DNA of 38,707 nucleotides from Trichosphaerium sp. ATCC 40318 (GCA_038496445.1 JALMLS010000251.1:1-38707); one strand, 5' to 3'; shown: positions 8,792-38,370, counted from the stretch's first letter. Notes: generated by a model from the sequence alone, not told the origin. Made by a program: numbers and translations.

Positions 8792-8933
8792 GCTCTTTTT
8801 TTTTTTTGGCGTGAATCCGTGTTCATTCATTATCGGAATAATGATACTTGTCTTAAAAGATTAAACTTAAATTCGGATCGTGTCTTCTTGATATCAACTC
8901 GTCAAGACTACTTTACCACCTGACAATACCGAC

Positions 8934-9512
8934 ATGAGCACAAACAACAGGTGCGGCTCACAGCGACGCTTTTGCGCGTTTGTAACACGTCATTTAGAAG
9001 AGTCAGACCTAAGAAGTATACACCAATTATTGTATCCCAAGAAGAAAGAGAGTACGTTGACGTCCAATTCTAATTTTATTTGTGCTTGTTTTGTGATATT
9101 AACCTTTGGACCATAGAATGATGACAGGGCTAAGACCCAAGCCAAAATACAAACTACTGGTGCGAGACCAAGTTACTCTAGGTTCTTAGTCTTTTTGTTT
9201 TTGTAGTTCCCGCCGACAGATGTTATTTTGGCCGGTTTCTCGCTACAGAAGTTTATTGTGAAAGAGCTGAACGAAAAGTCAGCAAACGTTTTAAAAACGA
9301 GAAGTAACATCCACTTTAAAACCCTACAGAGGTGGTTACAGTTTATGCGAGACGACCCTAACGCTGTCTTGCTAAGAAATGCGATAAGAAAACCAGTTAT
9401 CAACGAGCTCTTGAAACAACGCAACGACTTATATCACCCAAGGGGAGCTTTTAACCTGGACATAATGCAGGAGTGTGTTGATATAATTGTTCGTGTCCTC
9501 AATGAACAATGA
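8934..9512 (+). CDS. Orphan family F1, copy A (~140 aa, 4 exons)
   Basis: MSTNNR|RVRPKKYTPIIVSQEERE|MMTGLRPKPKYKLL|FPPTDVILAG...ECVDIIVRVLNEQ*. Intron phases are 2,2,0, with AATAAA after the stop. Paralogous to 32197-32783. Confidence 0.8.
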
Positions 9513-10391
9513 GTTTGTAGAATAAACGTATTATATTTATGGTTCACAAAGTTGTATTTGCTGCCTGTGTGTTTACTTGCTTTTCAAGCAGTACGAGTAG
9601 TTGACGACATGTTGCATTGTTTAACAATTGAGTTACTCACAGGCTTGGTGAAAGACCATTTGAATAGGTTGAACTACCCGCATACGTATGAAAAACGATT
9701 ATGTCAAATAAGTGGAACGGCCAACCACGTAGCGTGCTATTAGATCACGTTATAAGTGCATTGCTACCAGAACAATAAACTCTCCTTAGGTCGAACTTGA
9801 AGGATTTGGCATGGAACATGGGTAAAACAATTTTAATGACAATCCGTTTATTAGTTTGTTATTGTTCACCAAAACATTAGGCCAGGTTACGAGTAATGAC
9901 AAATAAAAATGGAATTTGTCCGTCGTCTTTTTTATCAACAATCCTATGTCATTACCTTCCATTACACTTCCAGTTGTACGATGCCGGCACCAGAGAAAAC
10001 GTTTTGCGATTTGTAACGTGCAAATGTAGACAGCCGCTGCCGCCTTTACTGAGAATAGCGTCTTCGTCAATCTCAGGCAGCTTCTACGCGTGAGAGAGTG
10101 TTTTCACTAGCCTTGAAACTACGTTAAAGTACACAGTTGGTTCTAAACAATCGCTATTAACATTTTAAAACAGTGTAATGCCGTGGTGTTGGTTGGAATA
10201 GCTGAAAAAAGCGAACAAAGCTAAAAGAAAAAGGACGACAGACAACCCTGGTGTTTTCTACATAATAACACGCCCTTTGCTTGTAATATTATTTATTGAG
10301 TTTTTTTTCGTTCATGGAGGTTTTTTTTTTCTCCGCATGTTTACAAGTATGATAATATAAAAGGTAAAAAGGCGTGTTGAAAAACACACAA

Positions 10392-11811
10392 TTACTTAGA
10401 ACGTCTTGTATTTGCTACAAGGGTATAAGTTATAAAGTGAGAATGAAATGACTTGCCTAAGCGTTGGACTATCCTAGCACGGCCTGGATTAATTATAGAG
10501 ACCAGAGCGGAACAGTAGTCAAGCAGAGCTTGACTATTGCCACAACGATTGTGAACTACATCACCTCGCTTTTGCGATATATTATGTATTAGTCGTTCGG
10601 CTGTGCTGGGAGCTATAGCGTTGGACACCAGGAATGTGACCATCAAATACCATATTTCCTTATTAAAGAAGAATTCGCAGTACCACCCACAAAAATCTAG
10701 AGAGCTTAGCATTGGTAGGCCTTCAGGCAAGTACTTTTGCAAGCACATCACGGCACTAAGAAATGCTTCACGGATCTCTATCATCATGAGGGTGTACCTG
10801 GACCAATAGTCAATGTCAAAATTATTTGACTCGCAAAACTCCTTGCTGAGGAGTTTACCGTGCTTTCGGTAGAACCTAATGGCTGTATGAGTGCTGCGTG
10901 GACAGCTAAGCAATAAGAAAACCAGCGATAGAAGGAGTTGACTCGGATTATCGATAAAAAAAAAAAGAACACGATTTTTATAATCCTATTTTTAGTTCAT
11001 CATTACTCATAACCCTAAAACCTTTTTCCTTCATAGTTTGTACGGTAGGTGCTAGCAGGTAACGAAAACATTTTTTGCTTGTTAAAACGAACTACAGGTT
11101 CACAGTGATGAACAAAAACGAGCTCAAATATGAAATTATCGAATTCTTATTTCCGGAAAAAGCAAAAAAAAAAAGTAGATGCCAAAGTGTACGTACCGCG
11201 TTTCGTCCAAAAATATGTAGACCACCTTATGACCTTGATAAATATTAGCTGAGGAAAAAAGTAACAAAAGAAAAAGTTTAAACATACATTCTAAAGGGCG
11301 AAAATTGCGCTCAAAGGCTATTGCCGAAAGATTGAAGACTAGAACATCTCCAGCGTTTCGAGCCTTTACGGCAGAGCACTTTAGAGCAACCCAGGCTTTG
11401 AGAATTTCAAACTGGGTTTTTAGAAGAGCAGGTTTGTTCATAAACCTTATAGTCAACTTCCATTTATCGCTGGACAACCACTCGCATAACGACAATTCCC
11501 TCACTTCAGGGACCATTGCTGGGAACCGGGTACCTAGCGTTCTATCGACAATGATGGTCAAATAACGCGCAATATCTGAGACGTCAGAGATATCAAATCT
11601 AACGCGTAATTAGTTTTACTCCAATAACCGATTTAAATAAATAACACGTACGTTATAGTAAGCCGGGGTCGCTTTAATGGCCTATAGCTCACGGTACTGC
11701 TATGTTTCCGCTTACTCTAAACACAAGTGTCATTACCACTACCTTAGTAAACTATCTACTACGTACTTGTCGATCCGAACGCTCTGCGTGAAAAGTATCA
11801 CGAGTGGTCAT
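10392..11811 (-). CDS. Orphan family F2, copy A (~330 aa)
   Basis: MTTRDTFHAERSDRQ|SKRKHSSTVSYRPLKRPRLTIT|FDISD...DRTLGTRFP...SLCEWLSSDKW...NKPALL...LPEGLPMLSSLDFCGW. The same motifs and similar intron layout occur in 29763-30973. Middle exon boundaries are approximate. Confidence 0.7.
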
Positions 11812-11922
11812 CGTAGTGGTGCTTGAAAAAATTGTTAGTTTTCTTGTATTAATAAAACATGTCAAACTAAAATTAGGTTTTTTGGGTTTTTTTTGAAATC
11901 AAATGAGAATTTATAACGTTGT

Positions 11923-12540
11923 TTATGTGTACGAGCAGCAACCACCTTTAGTTCTTATTGGTTTCTCCGCTTGTACTTCCGTTATACACGAGCGGTTCGA
12001 CTAAAGAGGTCTAATGTTATGCCATAGGACTGAAGAGTTAGTTGACTCGCAAAGTTTTAATAAACCAAATTTGGTACCTAATTCATTCGAAACGTCAAAA
12101 TCACCATGTTGTATTTTTCCGTAAAGTTGGTTGGCGGTCTGTTTAAAAGCCTATGGCGCGTGAGACAGGTTTTCGGGAAACAAAGTTTTATTAATGGCAA
12201 CATGGAATTCGAACAAATAAAACCTCTAATTTTGTGAAATGTTGGCAAACTTTCAAAACTAGTAATTAACGTACCTCTTCCGCGTTTGCAGCCATTTTTG
12301 CAGACGTTTCGAGAAAGAAGAGACCGTTCTCCTTTGCAAATTGTTTTCCTTCGTCTGTGCTCATGGCGCGCTTTTGTTCAAGGTCTGACTTGTTGCCTAC
12401 GAGCACAATGGTCATATTTTCGTTGGCATGTTTCACAGCTACGCAAATTTTAGCACTCAAGTAATATAACGTACCTGGCAATATCACGTAAGTAAAACTC
12501 CATCGGCTCCTCTGTAAATACGATCTGGGTGACAGATTTG
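11923..12540 (-). pseudogene. 5'-truncated, intron-retaining Rab2 pseudogene
   Basis: [52 protein letters not shown] is nearly identical to the Rab2 at 27.1-28.1 kb, with the same intron positions. It lacks the P-loop exons, has a deletion of [15 protein letters not shown] and has frameshifts. Confidence 0.9.
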
Positions 12541-12609
12541 TACCCAACGGCGATGGGCGACTCGCTTACAGGTACAACTGACCATTTGGCATTTAACGCT
12601 AACTACAAG

Positions 12610-13340
12610 GCTTCTTTTCGCTTTAATTTCAACAAGCTAGTAGGGTGGTAAGCCAAAGGTTGATAGAAGAACGCTTGGTTGCATACAACAAGGAACTGCG
12701 ACAACACGTGCTCTTTTGTGATCCTCTACATTGTATCACTTCCGGTTCTCTGGCTTTTGTAGTTATAATATTCGCGTCTTGATTTATTAGCAAATGTACA
12801 ATGCGCGTTGTAAGAGATATAGCCATAAATTTTAACTTCGTCCACGTTTTCTTTCGTTTTCAAAGCTTGGTGACTTAATTTTCTTATCTTTAAAAGCCAG
12901 TGATCGCTAAAATACGCAGATCTACGAGCAATGCACCAAACGACGTTGTCAACACAAAATACTACGATTTGACACTCCCTAGTTTGTTGTGTGAACCTTG
13001 TTGTTCCTCCAAAAGGCCCAATATCTGGCGTGTACCACGTCAGTTTGTACGGTTTAAATTTTAAACCATCGGAAAACACAAAAGTTAAGTTTGGCAAACA
13101 TGTCTTTACAGACGTTGAATGACATGCACAAATCTAATGTTTTTTTCTCTTGTCAGCCTTTATGTTCATTTGACGCGCACAGACACCAAAAAACCACAAG
13201 TTAGCAACTTTTGAAAACTTGCCTGGTTTCTCGGCTAGCAATTGTTCTCTGAGTCCAAGCCATAGTCCTTCGTATCTTGGGTCAGATAGTACTAAAGCCA
13301 CGCATAGAAGCAATAGAGTACTTGCATACGATAATTGCAT
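12610..13340 (-). CDS. Possible secreted orphan protein or relic
   Basis: MQLSYASTLLLLCVALVLSDP looks like a signal peptide. Downstream exons (12726-13097) could not be joined unambiguously. Confidence 0.35.
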
Positions 13341-13673
13341 GTTTTTAACGGTATGATGGAAGCTAAGTGAGGCTACGAATTCATTGTTTTGCAGTGCAAT
13401 ACAGAAAGCCGCCAAAGTTAAGTGCCTGCTCTAGCTTATAAAAGAAGGTCACAAGCGCTAGAATGCCATGTACCAGCTGACCGTTCGCACCAACTTTTAT
13501 CCCATTTAAAAAAGTGAAGTTAGGTTAAATGCCGTGTCAGCAGGTGAACTGCTTATTAATGGGTTGTCGTAAATTGCTGGGTTTTATTGTGATTATATAG
13601 AAACAGTAACTCTTATTACAAAGGTTTCGATTGCAGAAGGATTAAAAATTGTATGGGCTCAAAAGCACAAAAA

Positions 13674-15703
13674 TTATGCTTGCTTTGCTTTTGCAGTGTA
13701 ACCCAAGTGTAAACCTTGAGCAACCAACATACCAAACCCTGCAATGGCAGCAGGCACACCAATTACAAGGGAAGAAACCTAAAACTGGAGTCAGTAATGT
13801 ACTGCAGTAGGTAGTCTCCTTTTTACGTACCAGAGTATTAGTAGGATCTACTAGACCGCTGGCAGCAACGCCGACGGAAGTGATTGTGAAAGCGGCAACA
13901 AATGATATGAAAGAAATACCATAGCTAACAGCGCCAGCAGGTGCACTAGTACTCTCTGGTGCAGATTGAATCGGAGCTGGTGTAGGCGATGAAGCATCAC
14001 TGACAGCATTTTTTGCTTCAGCAAGGGCAGACACGAGATACTCTTTAACTTTTGCGGCTTTCTCTATTGCACTGCAAAAAAAATTAACAGAGCGTCCTTA
14101 CATAGCCACGTGATGGTACCTTAGGGAACTATCCGCTCCACAATATTGTTTAAAATCGGCGTCAAATAATGTAGAAAGTTCAGTTGCTATGCTATCTTGA
14201 CCGCCAGCTACAGGTGCTTCAACAGGTGCTTGTGACTTAGACTGAGCCTTCTAGAAACCAGTAAAACAAACGAATTCTGTGGTTTGTTTTTCGTACGTAC
14301 AGCTTTCTTCAACGACGCTTGTAATTCAGAAATTGTTTGCTCCTTTTCGGCATTTTCTGTGGTAATACGCTTCAACTCCTCGTCTTTAGCATGAAGGACA
14401 CTTGATTGTTCTTCAAGAGCAGCTGTGTTACGTTCCAACGCTTCTTGCATTGCTTCAACATCTTCTTTAAGTTCATCGATTTCGCTAGTATCAACTGGAG
14501 CTGCTGGGGCAGCTTTTACTTCTTTAGGGTTTTCTTGTTTGCTTAATTCTGCATTTTCTGCTCGGAGATTATCTAATTCTTTTTGTAGCTTTGCTACAGT
14601 CTCATCGCGTTTCTTTAGTTTATCCTCATTTTCCTATTACAGTTGTTAGAAGGATAACTCGTGTAAAATTAAGAAAAACGTTTTTCGAAGCGTCAAAAGT
14701 TTGAAACGGCTGATTTTGGTGTTTTTAGACGCACCTGTGCACGTGTGAAGGCATCAGAGTGTTCTTGGGTCACTTTGTTAAGAAGTTGTCGGAGTTCTTC
14801 CGTTTCAGAAGTTTTAGAGCCGCTCTTTAGCTTGGACTTGCTTGGTTGTTTTTTTGGCTTTGGCTTTTTATCTTTACTGCTTGTCTTTGGACTAACATGC
14901 TTGGAGCTGGTTTTCTTTTCTAATTTCTTTGATGAATCTTCCTCTGGTTCTGCTTTAGCTTCGGTTTCAGCTTCGCTTTTTTTTAATTCATCATCTAAGC
15001 TATCTCCAAAATACTAAAAATATGCTTAATACATGCACGCCATCATTTTGTAACTTTGTAGAACGATAAAAAACAAACAATTGGATTGTGACATTTTCTC
15101 CTTACCTTGATCGATACTTTGAGTTCTCCGGATACCTTATCCTTATCCTTACGTTTTCTAAGCGTTTGCCAACCACTTACTTCATCTACAAAATAATTAA
15201 TAAATTATTGATAATTATTGTTGTTTCCAAAAAAAATGTGAGTAACAAGATCGTACGTTTCATTAAATATGCTACTTTGAAGGAAAGTTGCCCCTGTAGT
15301 AAAGCGGTTACTTAGATACCCGAAAAAACAAAAAGGTCAATAATGACGCTATACCATGAAGTCTTTCCCAAACGCGTCGTCGTCCCACATAAGGAGGTTA
15401 ATTTCGCTGTCTTCAGATACGCGACTCATCGGAACTGCAAACGATTCCTACGCGCAATTAGCAACGGCTATACACCCCCACACAACGGGTAAAGCGTATA
15501 CGCACATTAAAGATTGGGGTCAGTGTGTTGGGAATGATTTTCGTTTTATCGATCTTTTTAGACCCCACTCTGATGTTAACATACGGATCACTTGTGCCTA
15601 TGCAAGTTATTAGTTTTTACAGGTAAAACAAAAACGTACCATCACTATCGTGGGCGTAAAGATCGCGGCCTTCGATAATCCTAATTAGAAACCCTCCGCT
15701 CAT
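13674..15703 (-). CDS. C2-domain / coiled-coil / C-terminal two-TM protein
   Basis: C2 domain: MSGGFLIRIIEGRDLYAHDSDG|TSDPYVNIRVGSKKIDKTKIIPNTLTPIFN|ESF...LLMWDDDAFGKDFM|GQLSF...WQTLRKRKDKDKVSGELKVSIK, with the Ca-binding Asp residues present. A K/E-rich linker and coiled coil follow. The end has two hydrophobic helices (GISFISFVAAFTITSVGVAASG; VSSLVIGVPAAIAGFGMLVAQGL). Confidence 0.85.
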
Positions 15704-15957
15704 TTGTTGGTTGAGGTGTTGTGGCAAAGAATGAATAATAATTCCAAAATAAAGCGGGTCTCTATAAGTAAACAATATGGTTGACGTCACTTGTGTGCGC
15801 ACTAACACGAGTGTATGTCAACTAAAAGCTCTTCAATGTTTCACTGATTAATGCTGATGTGGACAGTTGATAAAATATTCTGCAAAGAGTACAAAGAAAT
15901 AAGGCAATAATACTAATGTCGGTACTTTATTTTAATTGAAATCAAACTGATACGAGC

Positions 15958-16499
15958 TCACGCAACGCGGAGTATTATATGTACACCGGAAGAAGTGTCA
16001 CAAACTTCACTAATTTGTCCAACTTTAAGAGCGAAACTACACTACGGTTAATACGTACTACGCGTAAAGATTCACGTACGAGGCTTGTTCGAAAGGTAGA
16101 TGCATTTCACCTGAGTAAAGTAAGAAAACATGCTCTAATTAAACAAAAAGCGCGCCTCTGCCAAAGAAACCTAAATCACCACCTCTTTTGGCTGACGAGC
16201 AATCGCTGAACTCTTTGGCAATGTCAACAAATTGTTTTTCCCCAGATGTTATTTGAGCGCGATAGCCTACGTCTGTGAGTGATACTTGGCATAACTGGAA
16301 CGTTTAGAGCCGGAGTAGTTCCGTTACCTTTTAATATTTCTAAAGCTTCGTCCTTGGTTCTAGTTACATTGTCTTGGCGCCAACTACGTGGGTTTCTATA
16401 CAAAAACGTCCATTAATAGATGCAATGTCCCACAAGCACTCCTTACCGTACGGCGTTGTGTTTAACTAGAATATGGGAGCAGCGTACTTTGGTTGTCAT
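15958..16499 (-). CDS. PIN1: Pin1-type parvulin peptidyl-prolyl isomerase lacking a WW domain
   Basis: Not in the ORF track (5 exons): MTTKVRCSHILVKHNAVR|NPRSWRQDNVTRTKDEALEILK|GYRAQITSGEKQFVDIAKEFSDCSSAKRGGDLGFFGR|GEMHLPFEQAS|FALKVGQISEVCDTSSGVHIILRVA*. Confidence 0.95.
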
Positions 16500-16607
16500 T
16501 TGATTACTCTTGCACTGAAACTTAAACATGGATAATTTAAGTAAGATGATTTTATTGTATAGTACAGTTTTCTTTTTTTTTGACATTTAACGCAATGACA
16601 CTCCTGG

Positions 16608-18497
16608 TTACTCACCGAAACTTGGTACGTAAACCTCCACGCGTATGTCTAACTCTTGTAGACATATCTCAGCGCATTTTAGACGCAAAACGTTGAATGC
16701 GTGTACTGTGTTTCTATAGCCTGCGTATGCGTTCAAATATTCCCTCATGCAATCGGCATACCTTCCTTCGGCCTTGGCAAATGCGAGAGCTGCTTCTAAG
16801 TGAAAATTAAGAACGATTTTATCTCATTTCATTTAGTACACTTGCCTGTGAATTGATTGTTTTTATGGACATATCCTATCGCTCCTTTTGTCCTCGCACG
16901 TTCATCAAAGGCTTGTTTCCATTCCAAAATTTTATTTTTAACTTCTTGATCTTCCAAACTCTCACGTAGTTGCAGTATGAGCTTTAACAATCCTTGTGAA
17001 ATATTATTATTCTAAAATCATTTGTTAGTAGTTTGTACTATACTATAGTAACATACAGTATCTACATAAGATGATCTAAAGGCTTTCATCATCATATCAA
17101 ACTCTTTAATATATCTTGCTATGATATCATGTAATTCAGCATCCTCGGTTTGTAGTGCCTCAAAGAATATAGATAACTTATTTAACGCTTCGTCCGAAGA
17201 GTGCTGTGCAAAAATATATGTAAAATCTTCATGACTAAAGTGAAATTAATCCAACAAGTACCAGCAAAGAGAGCACGGCTTGGTACTTACTCCATAGAAA
17301 ATATGACTTGAGCAAAAGGCATTAATAGGCTCGTTATTTCTTCGTTTAATCTGACACACTGACGATCAAGTTTTCGAGCACTCTCAAGGATAGGAACTAA
17401 GGATTATTGTTTAGTATCAGTTCAGTTGCTATTGTTTAAAAGTACCATTACGAAACTTTTCGTAAGTTGCTTTTTTTGTACAGTAATTGAGTTGTGCTTC
17501 TCGTGTATCGTTTGTAGATTCAGCTATTCTTCTAGATTTTCTCAATATATTAAAACCTTGAACAGCATGTCTAAGACTTTCAGAGTACGTCTGTCCATGA
17601 TTAGTTTCATTTGATGTGTAGTATTCATACTGACTTGGTTGTACCTTTTTAATTTGCGTTATATCACGTAAGACACGAATGTTTTCAGCTGTGACATAAT
17701 GAAGATGTTCTATCAAGCCTGGCATCTGGTCCAACAGCTTTACAATAGGATGATTTTCAAAACGCCCTAAATCCAAATATTAGTTTATAGTTGATTGTAT
17801 CAACCTTTCTTACGTGATAATCTAGTTATACCCTTACTTGCAACCGCAGCTACCTGTCCATTTTGAGCAGCATGTGCTATTAAGTGTCAATTTGGCATTT
17901 TTTGTTGTTTTTTTCTGACACGTGATTAGAAGTTTCAACATACCTAACCCGTGTACGTAAACCTTGGCTCTACCAAGTGCCTCTTTAACACACGTTATAA
18001 ATTGAACTACAAACTCATAATCAATACAATTAGGAAAGCCCTACGCAATTTTGAACGAACACGCGAATAACGTTTACGCAAAAACAAAGGTATGTACCTG
18101 CGCTAACGTGTCCACGATACGTATAAGGTTATCAACGTATCTACGCGAATATTTAGCTCCTCAAGGTTTTGATTGACACATACTGTACGTAGCTAGGTGC
18201 TCTACCATCCGTGTTCTGCTACACAGTTAAGGGACGATTATTCACATTGAATGAAGTAAATTGTAATGGGCGGATCAAGGATACTGCTTTGGCGCCTATT
18301 TCAGAGGCTTCTTCGCGTATTTCAAGCAAGTATTTCAAAATCATTTGTATTGCGTCGTATACTGGCTCCAGATCAGTTTTGTACTTACGTACAAGACGCT
18401 CCTCGAACCATTTGCCGAAAGACCACAGAGAAACCAATTTTATCTTTACATCCGTTGATTGGTGAACTTGTGGTTTTTCCGCCACCACCTTTTGCAT
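16608..18497 (-). CDS. Hypothetical all-helical protein (~450 aa, possibly BAR/coiled-coil-like), with one U12 and one GC-AG intron
   Basis: A continuous spliced frame runs from MQKVVAEKP...EIGAKA|QNTDGRAPSYVQ|YVDNLIRIVDTLAQ|GFPNCIDY... through ORF 17429-17776 to ...ELDIRVEVYVPSFGE*. No motif recognised, and an extra 5' exon is possible. Confidence 0.7.
18219..18284 (-). other. U12-type (minor) GT-AG intron
   Basis: Minus-strand donor GTATCCTT (18284), branch site TCCCTTAAC, then TGTGTAG. Removal joins EIGAKA|QNTDG and removes the in-frame TAG. Confidence 0.85.
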
Positions 18498-18685
18498 CTC
18501 TACAATGTCAGCAGAGAATAAACCGACAAAACTCGCGGCTCCAGTCAAGTTCGTTCTTTAAAAGGCTAATTACACTTTTATAGCCGCCCAACGCGTAATT
18601 AGTATGATTTCAGGATGACAACGTTTGTTTCTGTTGTTGTAAACAAAATGTCATTACCGCAGTTCGAAATAGCCCCACGACACTA

Positions 18686-21168: not shown

Positions 21169-21587
21169 CAGTGTTGACAACGATCGAAGCACATTAAATG
21201 ACGCAATTTTGGGTGAATCTATGTGACGCAACATCACTCTGATCTCTTATTGATTGCAATACCACTCAGAACAATTTTATGTTGTCATACAATATCATAT
21301 TTGTAGAGCAAGAAGCATAAAAGTAAAGAATTTGTCTCCAGCTTTCATTTGCTAGTTTTGTGAACTTGTTAATAACCAAAGCTGGCGGCTGGCCATGTGG
21401 TAATTCACGTACATACAGGTTATTGATACACAGAATACATGTTGACCGCCCAACTTGTTGGAATTTCAGTAAAAAACTGGTAAGAAGATGCGGTTTGACC
21501 GATAAGGACAAAAAATAAAATGCACTTTCTCGGTTTCCTAAACTGTTTACCTCAAAAGCCGTTACATACTATTAAAATCCTACTTCA

Positions 21588-22221
21588 ATGTCTGAGAGAA
21601 ACAATAGCCCATGTAGTTCTTCCAGGTGCGCTTGCGGTTAAACAACCTCGTTTTTTTATTTTTTTGTGAATTTTTGCCTAGCTCGAATGGAAATGAAGAC
21701 AACGTTACGCACTGGTATATGCACCCAGATGCAAGTTATTTTCGAGTGAAGTTGACGAACGAGCAACTTGAGTGCGTTAACGTGATTCCCCTTTGTTGCC
21801 ATTAACCTTCCTGTAGTAAAATAAGTAAGATACGGCCAAAGCCACAAGGTGTATTTGTAAGTTTGGTATTCAATTTATTCAAAAAACACTAAATTTTGTT
21901 TAGCTGCTGGACCCAAAAGAAGTGACCGATATCTACGTATGTGGTCTAGAACTACTCCAGGCCATTAATTTCGTCAGTGATAAGCTGGCAAAACAAATGG
22001 ACTGCGCTCCATTATACTTTCAATCTCTTCCAGAATGTCGCCAGTGCTTACTGGCACCACAATGTGCTCTTACTCAGCACTTGTCTCATATTATCAATCC
22101 CGTAGCTCTTAGGGACGTAATACAACAGCGTAATAATGGCGCGCATGGCGCGAATAGCGGTGACATCGGCAAAATGAGTCGTAGTGCATTTAGCATTATG
22201 AGAACCCTTGCTCGGGTGTGA
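21588..22221 (+). CDS. Orphan family F1, divergent copy B (~160 aa)
   Basis: MSERNNSPCSSS|SNG...VKLTNEQLD|KISKIRPKPQGVF|LLDPKEVTDI...LYFQSLPECRQCL...PVALRDVIQQRNN...IMRTLARV*. It has the same 2,2,0 intron phases and the LTxE(E/Q)L(E/D)|xIxx(L/I)RPxP motif as the other F1 copies. Confidence 0.7.
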
Positions 22222-22540
22222 ATAAAACTTGTTTTTTTGGTTCAAACATTTTGGTTTGCCTGGCTTGGAACTTCTAAAAAGCCCATCTCGCACCTGACGT
22301 CAGAAAGGCCTTTAGTAATACGCCTTAGCTCCCAGCTCGCGATCTATCGCTGGTGCAAACTTTGCTTTTTGAAGTTAGCACGATCATTAGCCGATGGCCA
22401 AAACCGTTTATACTTAACTCGAGGTAGATTTTCTTCCTACCTTGTTTTTGATGCCATTTTAAGACAGAGCGCTACTTAGCTTATTGTCACTGAAACACCT
22501 TTTTCACGCATCAACGCGTATAAATTTAATTCGCGCTACC

Positions 22541-25236: not shown

Positions 25237-25734
25237 TACGATCTTGTTTCAAACAAAAAAAGAATCGAAAGAACAAAAATACTTTTCGCTTAGGGTACTT
25301 TTTAATCTCCTTGTATTTTACTGTACATTAAAATTACAATGGCATAACAAACTGTTCTTTTTTGTGTGACAGTACTTAGCACGCGCTATTCCTTTCGTTC
25401 TCGCTACTGATACTTACGCCCACGAGGCGAAAAAAATACCTACTTACTGGCACACAAAAAGCACTGTGCGCTAATGAATGTGCACGAAGAATTTGTGCAA
25501 TGCATTACGTCTAGGTTTTCGTTGTTTAGGCTTGTTTAACTAGCATCAGATCTGACCTAGGTTGCAAGCTTACCAGATAAAACCGTAAGTGCGAAATTCT
25601 CCATTCATGTTTATCCGTATACAAAGCCCTAGAACGTTTTTTGATTCTTTCAGGAAGTTTTACCAATCTCTTTTTGCAAAGAACTGCGTTAAAGAAACAA
25701 AAGAACATTGTACAGCATGGCAGTTTCCAAAAAA

Positions 25735-26016
25735 AGATATGTCAGGGTTCGTAAAGCGGTTCTTAAGTCGGCCTACCGGGCAACCCTTCGACAGAATCAA
25801 TCTTGCCGCAACACTTTTACCAGAAGTCGTGAGACAATAGGTGGTTAGCGAAGCCAGTGTTAGGAGACGAGCTGAGCCGCCGTTAAATGTTTAGTCGTTA
25901 GGCCCGAACTCCCCGGTGCGTGAGAACTTTTCTTGGACCAGATTATACCGGGTCTAAACCGTGTACGCTCAGCTAAGCCAATCTCCTTGGTATTGAATAT
26001 CAACAATTATCCTTTT
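25735..26016. ncRNA. Unassigned long rod-like structured RNA candidate
   Basis: Nested pairings: GGTGGTT/AATTATC, CAGTGTTA-GGAGA/TCTCC-T-TGGTATTG, AGCTGAGC(25870)/GCTCAGCT(25967), TTAGGCCCG(25898)/CGGGTCTAA(25949). There is a GGG-CAA-CCC hairpin upstream and T-runs flank it on both strands. Confidence 0.5.
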
Positions 26017-27141
26017 GTGCACGTATAAACAAACAAAAAATAAATTATGGGATACACTTCACCGAAATATCCACTTAAAATACTCAAATATGGATAATGC
26101 ACATTTAAAAACGCCCACAAACCCTTTTGAAACCTATCCTGACGCGTGAAAACAGTATTGGCGCTGTTTTGGTTCTCAAAAAGTGTTTTTGTTAGCTATT
26201 AATCCTATTTTCCCTTGTGCTTTGGTAGAAATTCGTTTTCTTTGTCTAACGCATTACACAGGTTATAGTGAACCTTTTACACGCTGTGCGCGAAATGAAA
26301 TTTGAGGGAAATTAGGAAAGCTGGCTCTGAAAAAGTAGAAAACGACGCTATGAAACTTGTGAAGCTAAACTGTTTTTTTTTCCTTTTTCGGGTATTCAAA
26401 GGTGCCGTTTCATACGTGTTTGTTGAGTGCTTTTAACTAAAAGCACTTGGCATGCCTTAAAATGACAATAATATCATGCACAGTTGGTTCAAAAGTGCGA
26501 TCAGTACCGAACAAGTGCCAAATAACGAAAAACAGATCATTTACAACAAGTTTTAAGCAAAACCGATTAAAGCCGCAAACAAAAATTCAACGATCACCGT
26601 GGACGACTACATTCGCGTAGGCTAATCGGTTTGGCTATTGAGAAGACAGTTCAGCGTTTTGTCGCATAAACCACCATTACAGACCGCCATTTTCCTCCAA
26701 GTTAACCTGCCAGCCGCGAACGAATGAGAAGAATCAATCTGGTGTACCCCTGGGCTTGTGCAATATTACTGCTGATTTGTAGCCAACCAAAAAGCTCAAC
26801 CGACATTTCTGTGTAACCACCACGTTTAAACTCGTCTCATTAATACGGAGTGCTTCGTACCTTTGAAGGCGTGTCTTAAGCAAACTTAAACTTACGCGTA
26901 ACAGGTGCATTGTTCGTTGTTGAAGTGTTGCTTAGAACGAACGAAGTACAAGCGTTATGCCCTTGCTCGTAATTGTGAAATTGCGTTTCCTACCAATAAC
27001 TGTATTTATGCTGCCAACCGTTCAGCTTAATTATAATTGTGCTCGCGCACCGTTGAAACAAAACTTTATCACTAATAAGTATTTATTTGAAAAAGGAAAA
27101 AGTCTTAATTTCTTCCAGAATTTTGTTTGTGGCGTGCATTT

Positions 27142-28071
<930 letters not shown>

Positions 28072-29620: not shown

Positions 29621-29762
29621 TATATTAGTTAAAAAGGTAAGTGGTTCGTGCTGTCGTGTATATGCAGTACCTTGCTGTTCTTAGGTGTTCAATGTTTTAA
29701 TTTTGACTAAAACAGAATTTCTTATGACTGTAAAAAGATTAATTTTCCCAACCTCTACTTGA

Positions 29763-30973
29763 ATGGCTTCCCGTGATACTAATCACAGGTGCCATTCCCC
29801 AGGTCGCGTACGTAGCACTTATAAACACAAATACGTTGTTTATAGGCATGTAGGGAACCAAGCGACCAAAAGAAGATAGAGACAATGGCAAACCTGCCAG
29901 CGGAGACGCTGACAGACCTGCCAAGCGGTTAAAAACCGCAGCTACGTGCGTTACACTAAACTTGTTTGTTTTAACCGTTTAGCTTAGACTGATACCAGAA
30001 CGTTATACTAAAATAGCGTCTGAACACTGTCATCTAGCATTCTACATGCTAGCCACGACAGACCTCACTTTTGGGCGGCACTTCCCTGACCTAGTTGAGG
30101 ATGATAAGGAGTGTTCTCTGTTAGACTGGCTGTCTAACATGCATTGGGAGAGGATAGTCTTCCTGACAAACAAGCCAGCTCTCATAGAGAGAGCTTTAAC
30201 AATAGTATCAGTGTTCATTTTCGAGGACACATTCCGAGAGGAGGAGGCAGCTTTAAGAGCTTGCGCTACTCTTGAATACAATTTTAAGCACTACATCGAT
30301 AGGCATAGCAGAGCCCTGGCATGTACGTTATTTCTTTTTTTTTTACTATTTCGAGAAACCTTTGACATTGGCGTAGGTAGCAAGGCTGGTACTGACACAG
30401 AGTGCGTATTTATTTGTTTCGCTTTGTTTGAAGTGTCGGGTAATTTATTGCTATTTTTAGGTTTAACGCTAAATGTGGCAAACGGTTTAGTAGCCCTGAG
30501 CTTTGCAAAAAATTAAACTTTAATTACAACGAGTTCAGGTGTTTTACAAACAACCTTTATATCGTTTGTGAGTGTATTTTATCAATGATATTACCACTGG
30601 AAGAGTTCATTCCAGAGGGGTTACCGCTCCTGAGGTGCCTCGATATTCATGGCTGGAACTCCATATTGTTCCACGGACCCAAATTGTGGGGTTTAGTCTA
30701 TGTCTACCTGAAATCGCAACGAAGAAATATTTGTCGCGCTAGAAACTTGTGGCGAACAATTATTAACAAGCGAAGCTTAATTTACCATGGTGGTAAACTT
30801 AGTCATTCAAAGTTAGAAGAAGATTGTATAAACTTTGTTCGAATTACTTGTCCTGAATTTGTTCCACGTATCACGGATTATAAGGTATGCTTTGCTTTTC
30901 GCGTCCGTTAAGGTTACTAACTAAAATATAGAATCAACTAGAAGAAGAAACAAGGAACACAATAAATAAATAA
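29763..30973 (+). CDS. Orphan family F2, copy B (~330 aa, 6 exons)
   Basis: MASRDTNHRCHSPGR|GTKRPKED...PAKRLKTAAT|LIPERY...DLTFGRHFP...SLLDWLSNMHW...NKPALI...|FNAKCGKRFSSPELCKKLNF...IPEGLPLLRCLDIHGW...ITDYK|NQLEEETRNTINK*. The spliced frame is fully open. Confidence 0.8.
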
Positions 30974-32109
30974 AAAATTTTCAAAGAAAATAAAAATTTG
31001 TAATATTGTCTATATACTTCTGCTTGCGTTACTTTTCTTTCACGATATTCTACATGAAGCATTTATTATCGCCTACCAAATTGTAGTTCTTATCACTTTA
31101 TGCTTCACTTTACTCTTCACTTCCTCTTCACTTCCTCTTTAGGCTAAATGACTTTCACTGTTTCTCTTCCTTTTTCTGATTTTGCTCGACAAGCTCTTCT
31201 TACGTTAGTGCAAATTTTATTGAGTACTAGCAGTACCCATGTACACTAAGCCATGACTTCGTACAACAACAATGGTGCGCTGTCTCATGACTGTTACGCT
31301 ATGGTTGTAGTGCGAAACACCACGTTCGTTACCCTGAATGAACACAGCGTAGTAAAAATATAAGCTACTGTATGAGAAATACTAAAAGCACCAGCACAAG
31401 CGATGGGCTGGTGCTGCGACCAGTGTCGAACATTGGAGGGTTGACGATAGTCACAGTAATCATCGAACGGAAATTTAGCTTATTTGGTTGCTAGCAAACC
31501 TGCAGTCAGATCGCAGATGTTATCGAATGCTGAGCGTCTCCACGTTGGTCCCAACGAAAACCCTCGATGACATCGTGTATAAGCGACTGATTTACCGTCA
31601 ATAACTACAGTAACGCTATTCGGTGACGACGTGTTGGCGCAGAGTTAGTAAGCCAGTGATCTAGTAAAATGTATTTTTTTTTTGTGACATCACGTGGTGA
31701 ATATCTGTTGGCATAATAAAAAGGGCACCTTCTATTGAAAATGATTGAGCCAAGTGAAGTTACACTTTTTGTAGTTCCTAGCGCCGTTGAAACAAAATTT
31801 CACTCCATAGAAACATAAAGCATGAGAAAGGAGTAATCATACTGCAAAAAAGAAAATACGAAGCCATCGTTTTGCACCCTACCACTTGATCGGCCTCAAC
31901 GAGGGCTCTGTTGGCGTACCTGCGTGCATATGTGTTACCTGGTTATGTAGCTCATCCTGTACGTGCGGACAAAATTTATGCTGCACATGTTGAAATACAA
32001 TACCAAGACCACTGATCATAACTACAAAACCACGAGAACCATAGTAACACAAAATGCTACAAGGGACTCGCGTTGAAAGTGTCCTGTATTTTCGCTTGCT
32101 TGTGCTGTG

Positions 32110-33004
32110 CCTTAAAAGACAACTTAAACATCGGATCTTGTCTAACAGAAAGCAACTTGTCAAGACTTTACTTTACTATCACTCTACAATACGACCATGA
32201 GTACAAACGAGAACAAGTGCGGCTTCATTGTGTCATTTTATTGCATTTGTAAGATGTTGTGTAGGAGCAATAAAGTGTACAAGGTTATCAACGGCATTGA
32301 ACTCACCAAAGAAGAGCTGGAGTACGTGTTGGACGAATTCTAATTTCTTTTCATTCTCTTGTGATATTAACCTGGCCCATCGTAGGATGATACAAGGGCT
32401 AAGACCAACACCTGAGTGCAAAGTTTTGGTACGAAGAACAAGTTTACTATTGGTTTTCTTAGTCTTTATTTTTGTAGAGTCCACCAATTCAAGATCTTGT
32501 GACTGGTGAGGGGCTAGTTTGTGGCGCTCTAGCTGAGCTAAACAAAAAGGCAGGGAAGTTCTTAACAAACCAAAGCAATATCAGCTTTGCGTGCCTACAA
32601 GAGTGGTTGTTGTTTATGCAAACCGACTCTAGTGCTGCTCAACTTACAAAAGCAGTTACTAGGGAGGTTGTCGATGAGCTGGCGGTCCAATGGGATCTCT
32701 TGACTCGCAGTAATTTTAAATTTAATCTGAACGCTTTGGCAGAATGTATTGGTAAACTTGTTCGTGTCCTTAATCAACAATGAGTTCTGAAATAAACGTA
32801 TTATTTTCTCGGTTTTATTTTACTATTTCTTACGTATTTACTACTTTGAGTGTTTACTTTGCTTTTCAATTGACCTGACTATTCGATGACACGTTGTATT
32901 GTTACTATTTTTACAAGCAATTGACATTCTAAACAATTATTCCAACCCACAGCTGTTTTCTATGCTGTGCTTATGGCCTCATGTACACGCTGTGCCATTC
33001 TGTA
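32110..33004 (+). repeat. Left arm of recent inverted duplication
   Basis: Nearly identical to the reverse complement of 37643-38457 plus 37223-37297. Confidence 0.95.
32197..32783 (+). CDS. Orphan family F1, copy C (~140 aa)
   Basis: MSTNENK|SNKVYKVINGIELTKEELE|MIQGLRPTPECKVL|SPPIQDLVTGEG...ECIGKLVRVLNQQ*, intron phases 2,2,0. Confidence 0.85.
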
Positions 33005-34039
33005 TATTCTTGCTTTTATAGCGCATTTGATAACTGAGGTACCAAAACACAGGTTAAAGTTTGTTGTTTGAAAATGTTAAAACTCATTTCATTAATCAGA
33101 CTTTTCATATTTGTGTAATAGTTTTATGAAAAGAAATCGTTTGTCTTCGTCTTTGGTCTTGCGCTAGGTAGGTAAACAGTATATATCATTTTACATGGAT
33201 ACCTTCTCTTTATTCGGCCGCAGCATATCACCTGTCTTCTGAATTCGAAAACTCTAGCTAGTTTCTTACTCGCTACTAGAATGAGGACAATATGAATTTT
33301 GCGAACGCCTAGAAATGTCTAGTAGTTTTGGTTCTGTGTAGAGCGTCTCCTCAAGTTTGTCTAATTCTAGCACCATGTGAAGTTGCTGCAACAAGATTCA
33401 TGGTTAGCGCTGATGATGTCAAGCGTTGCCTGTAGCCATTGTAGCCCTCTCCAGGTACTTCCCTACGCGAACGAATATTAGACACAAATGCAAGCACACG
33501 TGCTATCGATGAATTTCTAGACAAGCGCACCTCTGATTATTTCGGAACCAGTGTAGCTGGTTTTGATATTGAAAGATGATTGATCTTATTTAATTTTGTT
33601 GGTCAACAATCTCTTCGTGTTTTACGGCTCCCCAGCTGAAGGACGAAACGTCATTTGTACGGGATCCTTGAAACAACATTTACAATCTACAAACGTCAAT
33701 AAATTGGTAGTGTAAAAAAAGTTGTATCAATGGCGTTTTTCTCACGTGATGGCTTTCCTGTTCGCGGTTTGGTAGGCGTTTAAGAGAAGCGCCTACAGTT
33801 TCTTCGATGTTGGATTGAGAACGTGTGATGTTCCCTTGAAAGCCATATGTTCCAGAACGCTGTCAGCATCGATCCAAATGCCAATAGTGGCCTTGACGTG
33901 AATGCAAGGCGATTGATTTTTTTTATTTAGTACCTTCTCGCGTTTAACGCACTCTCGTTTTTTTGGAGGGGCTCAATTAGAGCTGACGGAGTTGTGTAGC
34001 AGGCTCATAAGGCGCGGTAATGATAGGACCAATAATCAC

Positions 34040-34660
34040 TGTCGTTGAGAACCCCCAAGGCGGTGGCTTTATTTCGATATCAGCGGAATACACTAATACT
34101 TAGTACCACTACGCAACTGCCAAATAATATAATGATGGAGGTAGCAAGTAATGCTGACACATCATTGTATCGCGGTCCCACTCTGCATCTAGTAAGAAGG
34201 ATGTAAGATCCTCTAAAACCTTAGCAACAGCCAATGCTGGCAATTGGAGAATTAAACATACGATCAAGTACTATATTGGCTGATGACATCTATCTGGGTG
34301 AGCTGTCAGCTCTGTAGCCAACCCAAACCGTGTGATGACCCCTACCGCAGCATGTTAGCTGCCGTAGTCTGTCACGATAAGCATCAAATCATCTGGTTGC
34401 ACAGCTCCTCGAATACTAGTACTTGGCTGTATAGCAACATTGAGCGGCTCTACCAATAAAGCTAACAACAAAGGGCATAGCAGGTTACCTTGCCCTATAC
34501 CACGTCCTTTGTTGAAAGTCCAGATGGGCACCATTGATTTTGATCCGCACAGCTTCAAAGCACTGACAAGACAAACAAAGCTGTGACTAAGACCTAGATG
34601 AGTGAGCACCTTAGCAAGGGCTTTCATACTACAAGAGTCAAACGCCTTTTAGCAATTCCT
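34040..34660 (-). mobile_element. Degenerate non-LTR (LINE, L1/Tx1-like) reverse transcriptase relic
   Basis: KAFDSCSMKALAKVLTHLG...RGIGQGNLLCPLLLALLVEPL...QPDDLML matches the RT motifs KAFD, GxxQGxPLSPLLF and a decayed YADD. Stops and frameshifts flank it. Confidence 0.85.
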
Positions 34661-35014
34661 GACAAAGTTTGAGCCAACACGTAATACGAACTCAGAGGGT
34701 CTATGTTTGGTTTCATTTAAACCTGGCCACGGTTATTTGGGCTAAGAATGTCAAAAAAAATGTATCACAGCTTAAATGAAACACGACATATCTTCACAGT
34801 TTCTCACAACGTGGGATAAACAGTTACGAGTCACGTCATTTTGCAATGTCAAGTATGGAGAAATATTGAAGGCGTTGGGGCAAATAAGAGTACTAACAAA
34901 GGCAATGTAGTAGCGAATAGCAATTTATTGTGCTACAGTAATCATGTAACGTTGTACACCCTTCTTTGTAGGTACATACATACACAGAAAGTTACTGACC
35001 TGATTTAAAACAAA

Positions 35015-35350
35015 GGATGATAATACGTACCAACTGCAAAGGAATCGGAAGAAATCCAAGGTGACACATAAAAATAAAGTAAATACTTGATAGAAAAAAA
35101 AAAAGAAAGTAAGACATACCGATTGCAAAGCAATCGAAAAAGCAGTCCGAGTAGTGAATTACAAGAGGTAATTCCAATAGTATGGCCCAAGAGGAATGCC
35201 AAGAGTGAGTGTCAAGAGGGAACACCAAGAGTGAGAACATAAAAATAAAGTTAGGTAGATACAAAAAACAAAGAAAGGTAAGACGTACCGATTGCAAAGC
35301 AATCGAAAGATCATGCCAAAAGTGAGCGCCAAGAGTGAATACCAAGACCA
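35015..35350. repeat. Degenerate tandem repeat (two ~169-bp units plus an older partial copy) carrying a perfect hairpin
   Basis: CGATTGC-AAA-GCAATCG occurs at 35120 and 35289 inside aligned units. A decayed copy CAACTGCAAAGGAATCG lies at ~35031. Confidence 0.8.
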
Positions 35351-35394
35351 AGTACCTAGAACGTAAGCAAATTGTATAATGTATTTTATTTTTG

Positions 35395-35478
35395 GAAGCT
35401 ATTTCAGGTTATTGAAGAAGTGCTATTTCAAAGAAGTGCTATTTTATAAGAAGAGCTAATTTAAGAAGTGCTATAAGA
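35395..35478. repeat. Minisatellite (AAGAAGTGCTATTT)n
   Basis: Four to five imperfect units. Confidence 0.8.
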
Positions 35479-35679
35479 TCCTATGACAAAACGGGATTAG
35501 CAAAGAAGGCACCGCTATAGTGCCAAAGGCTTCTCTGATTTTTGCTTGTAGGACGAGACAGGAACCTAAATAAAAAAAGAGTTATCGAAAAACTAGCAAG
35601 CCTCCAAAGCCATTTCCCACGTCATCTGTGTTGTCAAAAAATCTGAAACAATTATAACGTACAAGCCAAAGCGCGATTA

Positions 35680-35915
35680 TTTTTGTCAATGTACGCCTCG
35701 AGGTTGCGCTCAAGGGTTGCGCAAGCTCTTAAAGCTGCCTCTTCCTCTTGAAACGAAGCGTCAAAAATAAATACAACTATTATTGTAATTGCCCTCTGTG
35801 AGAGCTGGCTCCGAAAAGTGGCGACCCAGTGTGAGGTCTAGTGTCGCTAGCATATACTTTGCTAGGTGACCATAGCGCTGCTGGATCCGTCTAAGCTAAA
35901 CGGTTAACAAGTTTA
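35680..35915 (-). pseudogene. F2 relic (internally deleted)
   Basis: YMLATLDLTLGRHFS/PAL...FIFDASFQEEEAALRACATLE matches copy B (FEDTFREEEAALRACATLE). It shares the intron end AACCGTTTAGCTTAG, and the segment between RHF and PAL is deleted. Confidence 0.85.
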
Positions 35916-36059
35916 ACTTTCGGCCTTACTGTACTATCCTATCTTGCTGCTCTTACCTGTTCTGACTCGCAAACTTGCATGCTGTACAAAACTAAAACAG
36001 TTAGAACAAATTAGACACGTACATTTCAAGTCCCAAAAGTTGCTTCTGATAGATAGCAA

Positions 36060-36640
36060 TTTATCTGCACTCCCGTATAACATCCAAATTAAATCTGGAG
36101 TCACAATGCTGTAGGTAATTGCGTTGTACAGCAAGTTCGTTGATTACATTCTTCGTTACTGATACACTACACACAAGGCATTAGGATCAGTTGTAGGAAC
36201 ACTAGCCACTTGTCTAGGCTCTTGGAGCTGGTGTTACTGGAAGGTGCTCTTGGCTGGTAAGAAGCTGGACGAGATTGCTGTCTACGAGCTTAACCAAAAG
36301 TCGGCGAGAGTGCTACAAACGCGTAGCAACATCACGTTTACAAACCTATCGGATGGTTGTCTAAAGCTTTTTGTTTAGCTCAGCTAGAGCGCCACAAACT
36401 AGCCCCTCACCAGTCACAAGATCTTGAATTGGTGGACTCTACAAAAATAAAGACTAAGAAAACCAATAGTAAACTTGTTCTTCGTACCAAAACTTTGCAC
36501 TCAGGTGTTGGTCTTAGCCCTTGTATCATCCTACGATGGGCCAGGTTAATATCAAAAGAGGATGAAAAGAAACTAGAATTCGTCCAACACGTACTCAAGC
36601 TCTTCTTTGGTGAGTTCAATGCCGTTGATAACCTCATACA
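36060..36640 (-). pseudogene. Chimeric F1 pseudogene
   Basis: 36367-36640 is a near-identical copy of F1-C exons 2-4 (start). 36060-36330 is an older frameshifted F1 3' exon (SKSLDKWLVFLQ/DPNA...VTKNVINELAVQRNYLQHCDSRFNLDVIREC). Confidence 0.8.
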
Positions 36641-37317
36641 GGTTATCAGTAACTTAGTTTGATAATTTGTGTAACGTACGTGGCAAAGGTCATAGCACAT
36701 GTTCAGTATCATGGTAAGCTGTTTGTACCAAAACATCTGAAAAAAAGTGAGTTATGCGAAATTTAAGCGAACTACTCTAAAAATTGCACTTGCAGTCTGA
36801 ACATTGATTTGTAACTTGTGAAGTCTATGTGGATACCTCAAACCTAGAAGGCAGATCTGAGAAAAAAAAAGTAGAATTCCAAAACTTGAGCCTAATGAAC
36901 AAATGCAATATTGACGTGTCCTTGTTAACTAAGAATAAACCTTATTTTACGTACCTATCGATTGTACCTTATTATATACTAATACGAACAGTTTAGTTAA
37001 ATATACTATAAACGAGCCTTGGTGAGGAGTTGCTAGCTGTTGTTTAGAAGTGTGTAAAGTTTGAATCTTGCTTCACGTGGTATTTGAGCACTAAATAGCA
37101 CGTGAAGCATGTTGCTGTGTCTTGTTAAACCCGTATGCAAGAAAGGGTGGTTGGCGGTTTAGCGTTCAACGCAGGGTTTTCACGTGAGTTTTGTGATTAA
37201 AATGGCTACAAGTGCACGTATTTACAGAATGGCACAGCGTGTACATGAGACCATAAGCACAGCATAGAAAACAGCTGTGGGTTGGAATAATTGTTTTAGA
37301 GTGACGATTTTCATGAG

Positions 37318-37632
37318 AACGTTTCCGCTTTTCGGTGTGAACGAAAATTTCTGCTTAATCTTTACTAGCCACCAAGTGCTTTTTTCCTATTTTAAATACT
37401 TCCAACCTGTTTAAAATACAATTTTGTATCGATTTATAGCCCAAAGCGTGCCTTTGAGGGCTTTTAAGCGATATAATTGTTGCAAAAAAAGGTTGTACAA
37501 CCACGCAAAGTGAGGTTCGCCAAAAACTCATACTTTTTCGTAACCCCGTCTCGCCCTAAACAATCACGCAAACGCCTTTGAATGTCTAAACAGCTATACT
37601 ACGTAAAAAACATATACAGAGGCGGAAAGGTT
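37318..37632. mobile_element. MITE candidate
   Basis: Present in only one arm of the inverted duplication. Terminal inverted repeats AACGTTTCCGC / GCGGAAAGGTT match 10 of 11, and TTAA overlaps the right end. Confidence 0.5.
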
Positions 37633-37786
37633 TAACTTAAAAATGTCAAATTGCTTGTAAAAATAGTAACAATACAACGTGTCATCGAATAGTCAGGTCA
37701 ATTGAAAAGCAAGTAAACACTCAAAGTAGTAAATATGTAAGAAATAGTAAAATAAAACCGAGAAAATAATACGTTTATTTCAGAAC

Positions 37787-38370
37787 TCATTGTTGATTAA
37801 GGACACGAACAAGTTTACCAATACATTCTGCCAAAGCGTTCAGATTAAATTTAAAATTACTGCGAGTCAAGAGATCCCATTGGACTGCCAGCTCATCGAC
37901 AACCTCCCTAGTAACTGCTTTTGTAAGTTGCGCAGCACTAGAGTCGGTTTGCATAAACAACAACCATTCTTGTAGGCACGCAAAGCTGATGTTGCTTTGG
38001 TTTTTTAGGAACTTTCCTGCCTTTTTGTTTAGCTCAGCTAGAGCGCCACAAACTAGCCCCTCACCAGTCACAAGATCTTGAATTGGTGGACTCTACAAAA
38101 ATAAAGACTAAGAAAAACAATAGTAAACTTGTTCTTCGTACCAAAACTTTGCACTCAGGTGTTGGTCTTAGCCCTTGTATCCTACGATGGGCCAGGTTAA
38201 TATCACAAGAGAATGAAAAGAAACTAGAATTCGTCCAACACGTACTCCAGCTCTTCTTTGGTGAGTTCAATGCCGTTGATAACCTTGTACACTTTATTGC
38301 TCCTACACAACATCTTACAAATGCAATAAAATGACACAATGAAGCCGCACTTGTTCTCGTTTGTACTCAT
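37787..38370 (-). CDS. Orphan family F1, copy D (near-identical to copy C)
   Basis: Same exon structure as copy C. It differs by a 3-nt in-frame deletion (Met at the start of exon 3) and T>K in KFL(T/K)NQ. Confidence 0.85.

Follow-up and report, generated by a model that had tools for sequence, protein, structure and literature searches.

The 38,707-nucleotide stretch of DNA from Trichosphaerium sp. ATCC 40318 analysed here (GCA_038496445.1 JALMLS010000251.1:1-38707; the window, contig C306) is ~39% G+C, is eukaryotic in character, and carries four intact copies, A, B, C, and D, of an orphan gene family, F1. Splice-aware gene models place the four start codons exactly at the positions given in the initial annotation and reproduce its intact four-exon structure with phases 2/2/0, with GT..AG introns in all four copies (Table 1). 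The introns are 45-65 nucleotides (nt) in A, B, C, and D and 41-74 nt family-wide, and begin GTRCG, except for one B intron that begins GTAAGT; intron 3 exists and aligns as had been described, but is 47 nt and starts, with GTGCGA, further 5' than the stretch that had been quoted for it. The encoded proteins comprise 139-161 amino acids (aa) in the window and 132-161 aa family-wide, and the motifs named earlier, such as RPxP and ELNxK, are found in the family alignments. C and D are an inverted pair, 98-99% identical, with D differing by an in-frame deletion of 3 nt where exon 3 begins and by a single amino-acid change in exon 4. The chimeric relic that had also been reported is a mosaic of three F1 pieces, spanning 36061-36646.

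Queried with exon 4 and with an F1 profile, the 70-Mb genome yields at least nine intact F1 genes, one truncated copy, and fragments, on four contigs: in addition to the window copies, A2 (97% aa identity to A), B2 (49% aa identity to B), and H are located on C260; D2, E, and F are located on C240; and G and the truncated copy, I, are located on C16. Several F1 fragments turned up in the same search, and a B-type pseudogene and fragment are present on C240. B is a very distant paralog, with 16-19% aa identity in the last exon and DNA that is not alignable, and is unmatched by the F1 family profile at E ≤ 10. We count it as F1 because it shares the exon structure, because RPKP is present in exon 3, and because its QRNNGAH is in register with QRNDLYH. 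A gene-syntax scan of 215 kb ([RKE]PxP, donor, short intron, and 85-125-aa last exon) returned F1 genes only, including B and B2. A hidden F1 copy opposite H, sought in 25357-27051, was not found.

Searches for relatives and structure prediction used exon 4, the last exon, only. No sequence relatives of F1 were found in Pfam, sequence-cluster, protein, or metagenome searches, in agreement with the earlier description of the family as an orphan, and F1 has been seen in this amoeba alone. Specifically, no F1 relative was found by a word search with the family alignment in 5.8 billion clusters or in JGI metagenome contigs, and no genuine relative was found by an exhaustive hidden Markov model (HMM) search of 1.84 billion representatives, the single match of which is spurious, being a tandem repeat in translation that collects its score from seven stretches. 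Pfam yielded no match over the cut-off, PADLOC and NCBIfam yielded nothing relevant, and a PDB sequence search yielded no HEPN match and one match, to NLRC4 (E 0.06-0.5), that we take as chance. The top sub-threshold Pfam matches, for A and A2 only, are HEPN_Swt1 (E 0.008-0.02) and HEPN_RiboL-PSP (E 0.014-0.065), and the ESM Atlas gives weak leads to RnlA-HEPN (0.89) and Csm6-HEPN (0.87). The same genome contains a solo Swt1-like HEPN open reading frame (ORF) of 140 aa (C1:649353-649772 = L047:1429-1851, minus strand; PF18731 E 3e-4; LRNAVCH), in which LNEK is followed after 48 aa by RNAVCH, compared with 50 aa and RNDLYH in F1. This ORF has a 45% identical paralog 2 kb away and no relatives in the word search.

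HEPN domains are all-alpha, up-and-down helical bundles of ~110 residues, often with an insert between helices 2 and 3, and carry an upstream conserved acidic residue, typically Ex3[KR], in helix 2. AlphaFold2 predicts a confident helical bundle for A with the exon-4 alignment (predicted local distance difference test, pLDDT, 82) and an equally confident one for B with a wider alignment (pLDDT 89; predicted template modeling score 0.83), and the two models have an identical helix order. An exhaustive VIA search of PDB folds returned ~8-10 HEPN entries in each top-50 list, with Z 5-7.7. For model A, these include 1wwp (7.7), Csm6 6tug (6.3), HEPN toxin 8xdj (6.2), 2hsb (6.0), 1ufb (5.8), sacsin HEPN 3o10 (5.5), 1jog (5.2), and HepS 9oik (5.1), with HepT 6m6w (6.0), 5yep (5.3), 4nqf (4.9), and 7ae2 (4.2) recovered in a second look; for model B, they include 2hsb (7.7), 1ufb (7.3), 1wwp (6.9), 3o10 (6.8), 8xdj (6.4), 1wol (6.2), 1jog (6.0), AbiF 8vz6 (5.9), and 5yep (5.8). 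The rank-2 match, 9fcv, which is titled 'Cas nuclease' only, was left uncounted as HEPN.

The HEPN catalytic motif, Rx4-6H, has been placed where helix 3 ends, and the residue that directly follows its R is polar (N, D, or H) (PMC3710099). A sequence R-N-x3-H is present in A and A2 (RNDLYH), E and F (RNNCNH), G (RNYLQH), B (RNNGAH), and the B-type pseudogene (RNSGAH); R and H are both gone in C, D, D2, and I (WDLLTR), H (QNDNMI), and B2 (MNNGAR). In model A, the motif (residues 72-77) overlaps the end of a helix at residues 62-75 and precedes a helix at residues 84-100; in model B, the motif (residues 76-81) is placed in the same manner between helices at residues 66-80 and 88-103. In both predicted models, the motif thus spans the junction between the third long helix and the loop that follows it, matching the published rule, and RNxxxH is in register across subfamilies that share only 16-19% identity. 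To the extent that the models are right, the motif is the strongest single point for a HEPN assignment. Taking the B type as outgroup implies that R and H were lost together three separate times: in the C/D/D2/I lineage, in H, and in B2.

We propose, with a probability of roughly 0.6, that F1 is a lineage-specific expansion of minimal HEPN-like proteins, some of its paralogs looking active and others dead, and that it occupies a region of duplication and rearrangement next to another orphan family, F2. The analysis itself establishes the gene models, the set of copies, the selection statistics, the lack of relatives by sequence, the predicted fold, and where the motif lies; HEPN ancestry, RNase activity, dimerization, the role of the dead copies, and any part in defence or conflict we infer. 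Several observations weigh against this proposal. The models cover exon 4, and the N-terminal 38-56 aa (exons 1-3) lie outside them. Foldseek with the A and B models gave no match at E ≤ 0.001; all VIA Z values are ≤ ~8, which by the tool's own account is frequent among helical bundles; and VIA ranks first, for A and B alike, a chain that carries no HEPN annotation, 9cap_B (LPD-3 complex). No HEPN profile reaches its cut-off (best 15 bits versus 27.5, for HEPN_Swt1), the HEPN_Swt1 HMM run over the whole genome misses F1, and hhalign of F1 with the Swt1-like ORF aligns 10 residues only, around LNEK. Finally, Ex3[KR] is matched loosely by ELNxK, which lies in the first exon-4 helix and is retained by A, C, D, E, and F; G reads KLNVD here, H reads KLNEK, and B reads AINFV.

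Much of this would be expected if F1 were instead a non-HEPN orphan helical bundle, for example a regulatory or structural adaptor, with RNxxxH serving as a family-specific surface or binding motif. The HEPN look-alikes would then reflect the commonness of four-helix bundles, in keeping with the unspecific range of the VIA scores and the lack of significant Foldseek and profile matches, and the absence of R and H from half of the family, including its best-conserved clade, would pose no difficulty. Where the motif sits within the fold, the polar residue that follows its R, and the joint loss of R and H argue in the other direction, as do the sub-threshold Pfam matches, the language-model leads, and the number of HEPN entries in each top-50 list, and we consider a non-HEPN bundle rather unlikely.

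The initial annotation had held that F1 proteins diverge faster than their own introns and flanks. In the last exon, A aligns with C/D without gaps at 39-40% aa identity, and the introns and leader of A and C still align, at 67% identity for the leader and 67, 71, and 78% for introns 1, 2, and 3, against 58% for exon 4 and 48% for exon 2; all of these values are well above those of shuffled controls. Coding divergence equal to or above non-coding divergence therefore stands for the A-C pair; clearly faster coding divergence is confined to the C lineage, and over the whole tree the two are about equal, with tree lengths of 1.9 substitutions per site for exon 4 and 2.0 for the 5' non-coding parts. 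Third codon positions are only 40-52% identical. Because synonymous divergence (dS) of 1.0-1.7 is far above intron divergence, the introns and leader must be constrained and provide no neutral reference.

The sources of this constraint can be seen in the sequence. Intron conservation centres on the 5' splice site, the branch-site block TGATATTAAC (8 of its 11 exact matches in 215 kb are within F1 intron 2), and a T-run followed by a TGTAG acceptor. The leader contains TCAAGACT, which is present 37 nt upstream of the ATG of both C and D as well as upstream of A, and all eight of its exact matches in 215 kb are upstream of F1 genes. AATAAA is located at the stop codon or just past it. The short F1 introns are kept mainly at splice signals and the leader bears a family-specific motif, so that neither is a neutral yardstick. 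Each F1 gene is compact, combining a leader motif of its own with AATAAA and three very short introns whose splice signals are kept, and constraint on these elements explains why non-coding parts remain alignable between paralogs with saturated synonymous sites. Where introns are as short as 45-65 nt and promoters are compact, the non-coding parts are mostly signal, and positive selection cannot be read from coding sequence that has diverged as much as the introns.

To estimate the ratio of nonsynonymous to synonymous divergence (dN/dS, ω), we joined the exons into codon alignments (9 sequences, 124 gap-free codons) and analysed them with our own GY94/F3x4 likelihood code on the IQ-TREE topology ((A,A2),((E,F),(G,(C,(D,D2)))),H). 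Between lineages, pairwise dN is 0.4-0.6, dS is 1.0-1.7, and ω is 0.2-0.55. A one-ratio model gives ω = 0.447 and rejects ω = 1 (likelihood-ratio test statistic, LRT, 33.3), and model M1a assigns 50% of codons to ω 0.14 and 50% to ω 1. Model M2a assigns an extra 20% of codons to ω 1.76, which, with 9 sequences and 124 codons, is not a significant improvement on M1a (LRT 2.27, p ~0.3). In a branch model with background ω 0.45, the young tips A, A2, E, and F have a maximum-likelihood ω of 2.7, not significantly above 1 (LRT 1.1), and the C/D/D2 clade has ω 0.056 (LRT 11.3 against 1); the LRT of the three-ratio against the one-ratio model is 9.9. Raw counts of replacement (N) and synonymous (S) changes are 4 N : 0 S for A/A2, 5 N : 1 S for E/F, and 1 N : 8 S for C/D/D2, a difference between the young motif-bearing pairs and C/D/D2 that gives a Fisher p of ~0.003 on these approximate counts. 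An excess of replacement changes is confined to these young pairs (9 N : 1 S together). Episodic positive selection on the stem of the C clade was considered and rejected (ω ~0.5, not above 1). G is placed differently in the tree of the 5' part and the exon-4 tree, suggesting past exchange between paralogs. With a small sample and synonymous sites close to saturation, the tests are low in power.

These values do not bear out the diversifying selection that had been claimed for F1: family-wide ω is well below 1, which weakens that claim, yet the constraint is below the level of housekeeping genes. The F1 copies are real genes, evolving fast under weak purifying selection and without detectable diversifying selection, and their speed is accounted for by the near-neutrality of about half of their codons rather than by any detectable positive selection. 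The interpretation that had accompanied the claim, namely that F1 takes part in genetic conflict (as a poison/antidote, anti-parasite effector, or self/non-self factor) and that diversifying selection has pushed its proteins apart, can draw on the near-exclusive replacement differences within A/A2 and E/F, set against the synonymous excess in C/D/D2, on the tip ω of 2.7, and on the half of codons at ω 1. It can draw, further, on a region in which copy number varies, indels occur, and a chimeric relic is present, on B and B2 being 69% identical inside collinear blocks of 88-99%, and on HEPN domains being typical of toxin, defence, and conflict systems (PMC3710099). We nevertheless judge it unlikely, in view of the family-wide ω and the uniformly low deep pairwise values, of the non-significant M2a and young-tip tests and the C-stem estimate, and of a non-coding yardstick that is itself constrained.

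The opposite possibility, that F1 copies are neutrally decaying duplicates or cargo of repeat elements with accidentally open frames, would fit a repeat-rich region that contains relics, a truncated copy, and a 14-copy element upstream of many F1 genes. At least nine copies (ten gene models with A2 and D2), however, keep the ATG, GT..AG introns, frame, stop codon, and AATAAA across dS > 1; ω = 1 is rejected, with the C clade at 0.06; and the block containing A has no terminal repeats or target duplications. Neutral decay is largely refuted by the selection tests and is, in our estimate, highly improbable.

Table 1. Features of the F1 genes and their surroundings, in window coordinates.
Feature	Position	Strand	Details
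TCAAGACT, family-specific leader/promoter motif	8902-8909	+	32 nt 5' of the ATG of A
F1 copy A, 139 aa	8934-9512	+	exons 8934-8950, 8998-9051, 9117-9159, 9207-9512; introns 47, 65, 47 nt
Candidate HEPN catalytic motif of A, R-N-D-L-Y-H	9420-9437	+	exon-4 residues 72-77; from alignment and AlphaFold2 position
3' flank of A	9521-9620	+	AATAAA 9521-9526; conserved blocks 9570-9587 TGTTTACTTGCTTTTCAA and 9603-9620 GACGACATGTTGCATTGT
F2a, orphan gene convergent with A	10392-11609	-	C-terminal exon within 10392-10985, N-terminal exon within 11136-11609; KRGDVVH
F1 copy B, 161 aa, distant subfamily	21588-22221	+	exons 21588-21625, 21682-21771, 21817-21856, 21904-22221
RNNGAH of B	22129-22146	+	from gene model
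F2c, orphan gene	29983-30911	+	1.3 kb upstream of C; 27% identical to F2a C-terminal exon; KRSLIYH
F1 copy C, 141 aa	32197-32783	+	exons 32197-32216, 32265-32321, 32386-32428, 32478-32783
Relic, G-like exon-4 piece with stop	36061-36162	-	from alignment
Relic, E-type exon-4 piece	36240-36361	+	93% identical to a copy on contig C240
Relic, inverted C-type piece, exon 2 to start of exon 4	36367-36646		97% identity
F1 copy D, 140 aa, inverted duplicate of C	37787-38370	-	from gene model

The window is collinear with C260, with 99% identity over the first 21 kb, three large indels, and 83-88% identity thereafter; C240 carries a version of the left part of the window that is 88-93% identical and lacks the block containing A, the whole 6333-13285 segment being missing. 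The three contigs may be haplotypes or paralogous segments. B and B2 share a position (window 21328-22474 versus C260 28789-37072) and are 69% identical, with dS 0.66-0.90, and the blocks beside them are 98.6% identical on one side and 88% identical on the other. Synonymous divergence of B and B2 is thus far above that of the flanks, implying that gene and flanks have different histories, be it through old alleles, cassette exchange, or flank conversion. Two insertions relative to C260 (window 6426-8341 and 10841-13363) flank the A block, the second of which takes out the N-terminal part of F2a on C260, so that F2a is intact in the window and truncated on C260. A mobile-element origin of the A block was considered and rejected, there being no terminal inverted repeats or target-site duplication at 8342/10840 or at the two flanking insertions.

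F2 genes have at least two exons and encode ~200-290 aa, with paralogs on C240, C260, and C16, and one lies within 0.6-3.5 kb of each of six F1 copies: A, C, E, F, G, and D2. The C-terminal exon of F2 contains invariant P, L, D, G, and W residues, an invariant R-x4-H, and an invariant C 18 residues after the R, and the divergence of F2 genes ranks like that of their F1 neighbours. F2 has no Pfam match and no word-search relatives. Homology between F1 and F2 was considered and rejected (hhalign probability 0.25%); beyond the motif, nothing ties F2 to HEPN or to F1. That F2 and F1 might act as one functional unit is something we only infer.

Other features of the region are repeats. A repeat present in ~14 copies occupies window 7209-7875 (plus strand; core 7545-7718), and six of its copies lie 0.7-2 kb upstream of F1 genes. 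Within it are an upstream box that is conserved, a TATA-like GTATATAATCC, and a block of ~95 nt, almost without variation, that ends GGATTTT; in these features it looks like a Pol III-type gene for a small RNA. No conserved ORF and no Rfam match was found in it. A 122-nt inverted repeat with 93% complementarity is located at 8681-8802, just upstream of A, and at 18080-18201, with copies on C260 and C16. No Rfam or tRNA match was found in the window, and the ten largest other ORFs in the window have no Pfam domain.

If F1 proteins are HEPN-like, the last exon would encode a minimal HEPN-like helical domain, and A, A2, E, F, G, and B would, by analogy with other HEPN RNases, be dimeric endoribonucleases that need no metal. 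The copies without R and H (C, D, D2, H, and B2) would be non-catalytic partners or regulators rather than decaying genes; the C/D clade is under strong purifying selection despite the loss of R and H. A conflict-type role for F1 is plausible by analogy, because fold and motif point to HEPN. A more elaborate scheme would make F1 and F2 a eukaryotic two-gene RNase module, in which dead F1 proteins (C/D, H, and B2) neutralize or license live ones by heterodimerization, and which persists as very old and strongly diverged cassettes under balancing selection. Motif-bearing and motif-less F1 copies are 10-25 kb apart on each contig, and the scheme is suggested by the B/B2 dS of 0.7-0.9 within ~12%-diverged blocks, the presence/absence of A, and the truncation of F2a on one haplotype; we regard it as speculative and improbable. 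If true, it would represent a HEPN-built poison/antidote or self/non-self system in an amoeba. The HEPN assignment itself, if true, would add a family invisible to sequence searches to the known HEPN expansions in amoebae, and would provide a series of live-looking and dead paralogs for asking what inactive eukaryotic HEPN domains do.

Among known systems, solo, catalytically active Swt1-family HEPN expansions occur in Naegleria, dictyostelids, and Daphnia (Anantharaman et al. 2013, PMC3710099). Like these Swt1/Ava_2192-type solo HEPN proteins (PF18731), F1 proteins are stand-alone, small, encoded by a multi-copy lineage-specific family in an amoeboid eukaryote, and carry R-N-x3-H; PF18731 is, moreover, the best, sub-threshold Pfam match for F1, and the spacing from LNEK to RNxxxH matches that in the Swt1-like ORF of the same genome. 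Unlike them, F1 has no significant sequence match, half of its members are motif-less, and its four-exon structure and N-terminal RPxP segment are not described for those proteins.

The minimal HEPN toxins (HepT) of bacterial and archaeal MNT-HEPN pairs (SO_3166 5yep, 6m6w, 8xdj, 7ae2, 1wwp, 2hsb, and 1ufb) are similar to F1 proteins in size, at ~130-140 aa, and have Rx4H near the end of the penultimate helix, and the F1 exon-4 model superposes on HepT-type chains from about residues 22-35 to the C-terminus with Z 4-7.7. F1 differs in having an orphan neighbour, F2, rather than an MNT nucleotidyltransferase partner, in lacking the tyrosine of RX4HXY, in being eukaryotic and intron-containing, and in a sequence identity of only 6-14%. 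Catalytically dead HEPN domains are known in Swt1 proper, in a subset of MtlR, and in NT-fused HEPN (PMC3710099), and C/D, H, and B2 resemble these in lacking Rx4-6H with predicted fold and selection retained; unlike in those cases, dead and live versions of F1 coexist as close paralogs in one gene cluster.

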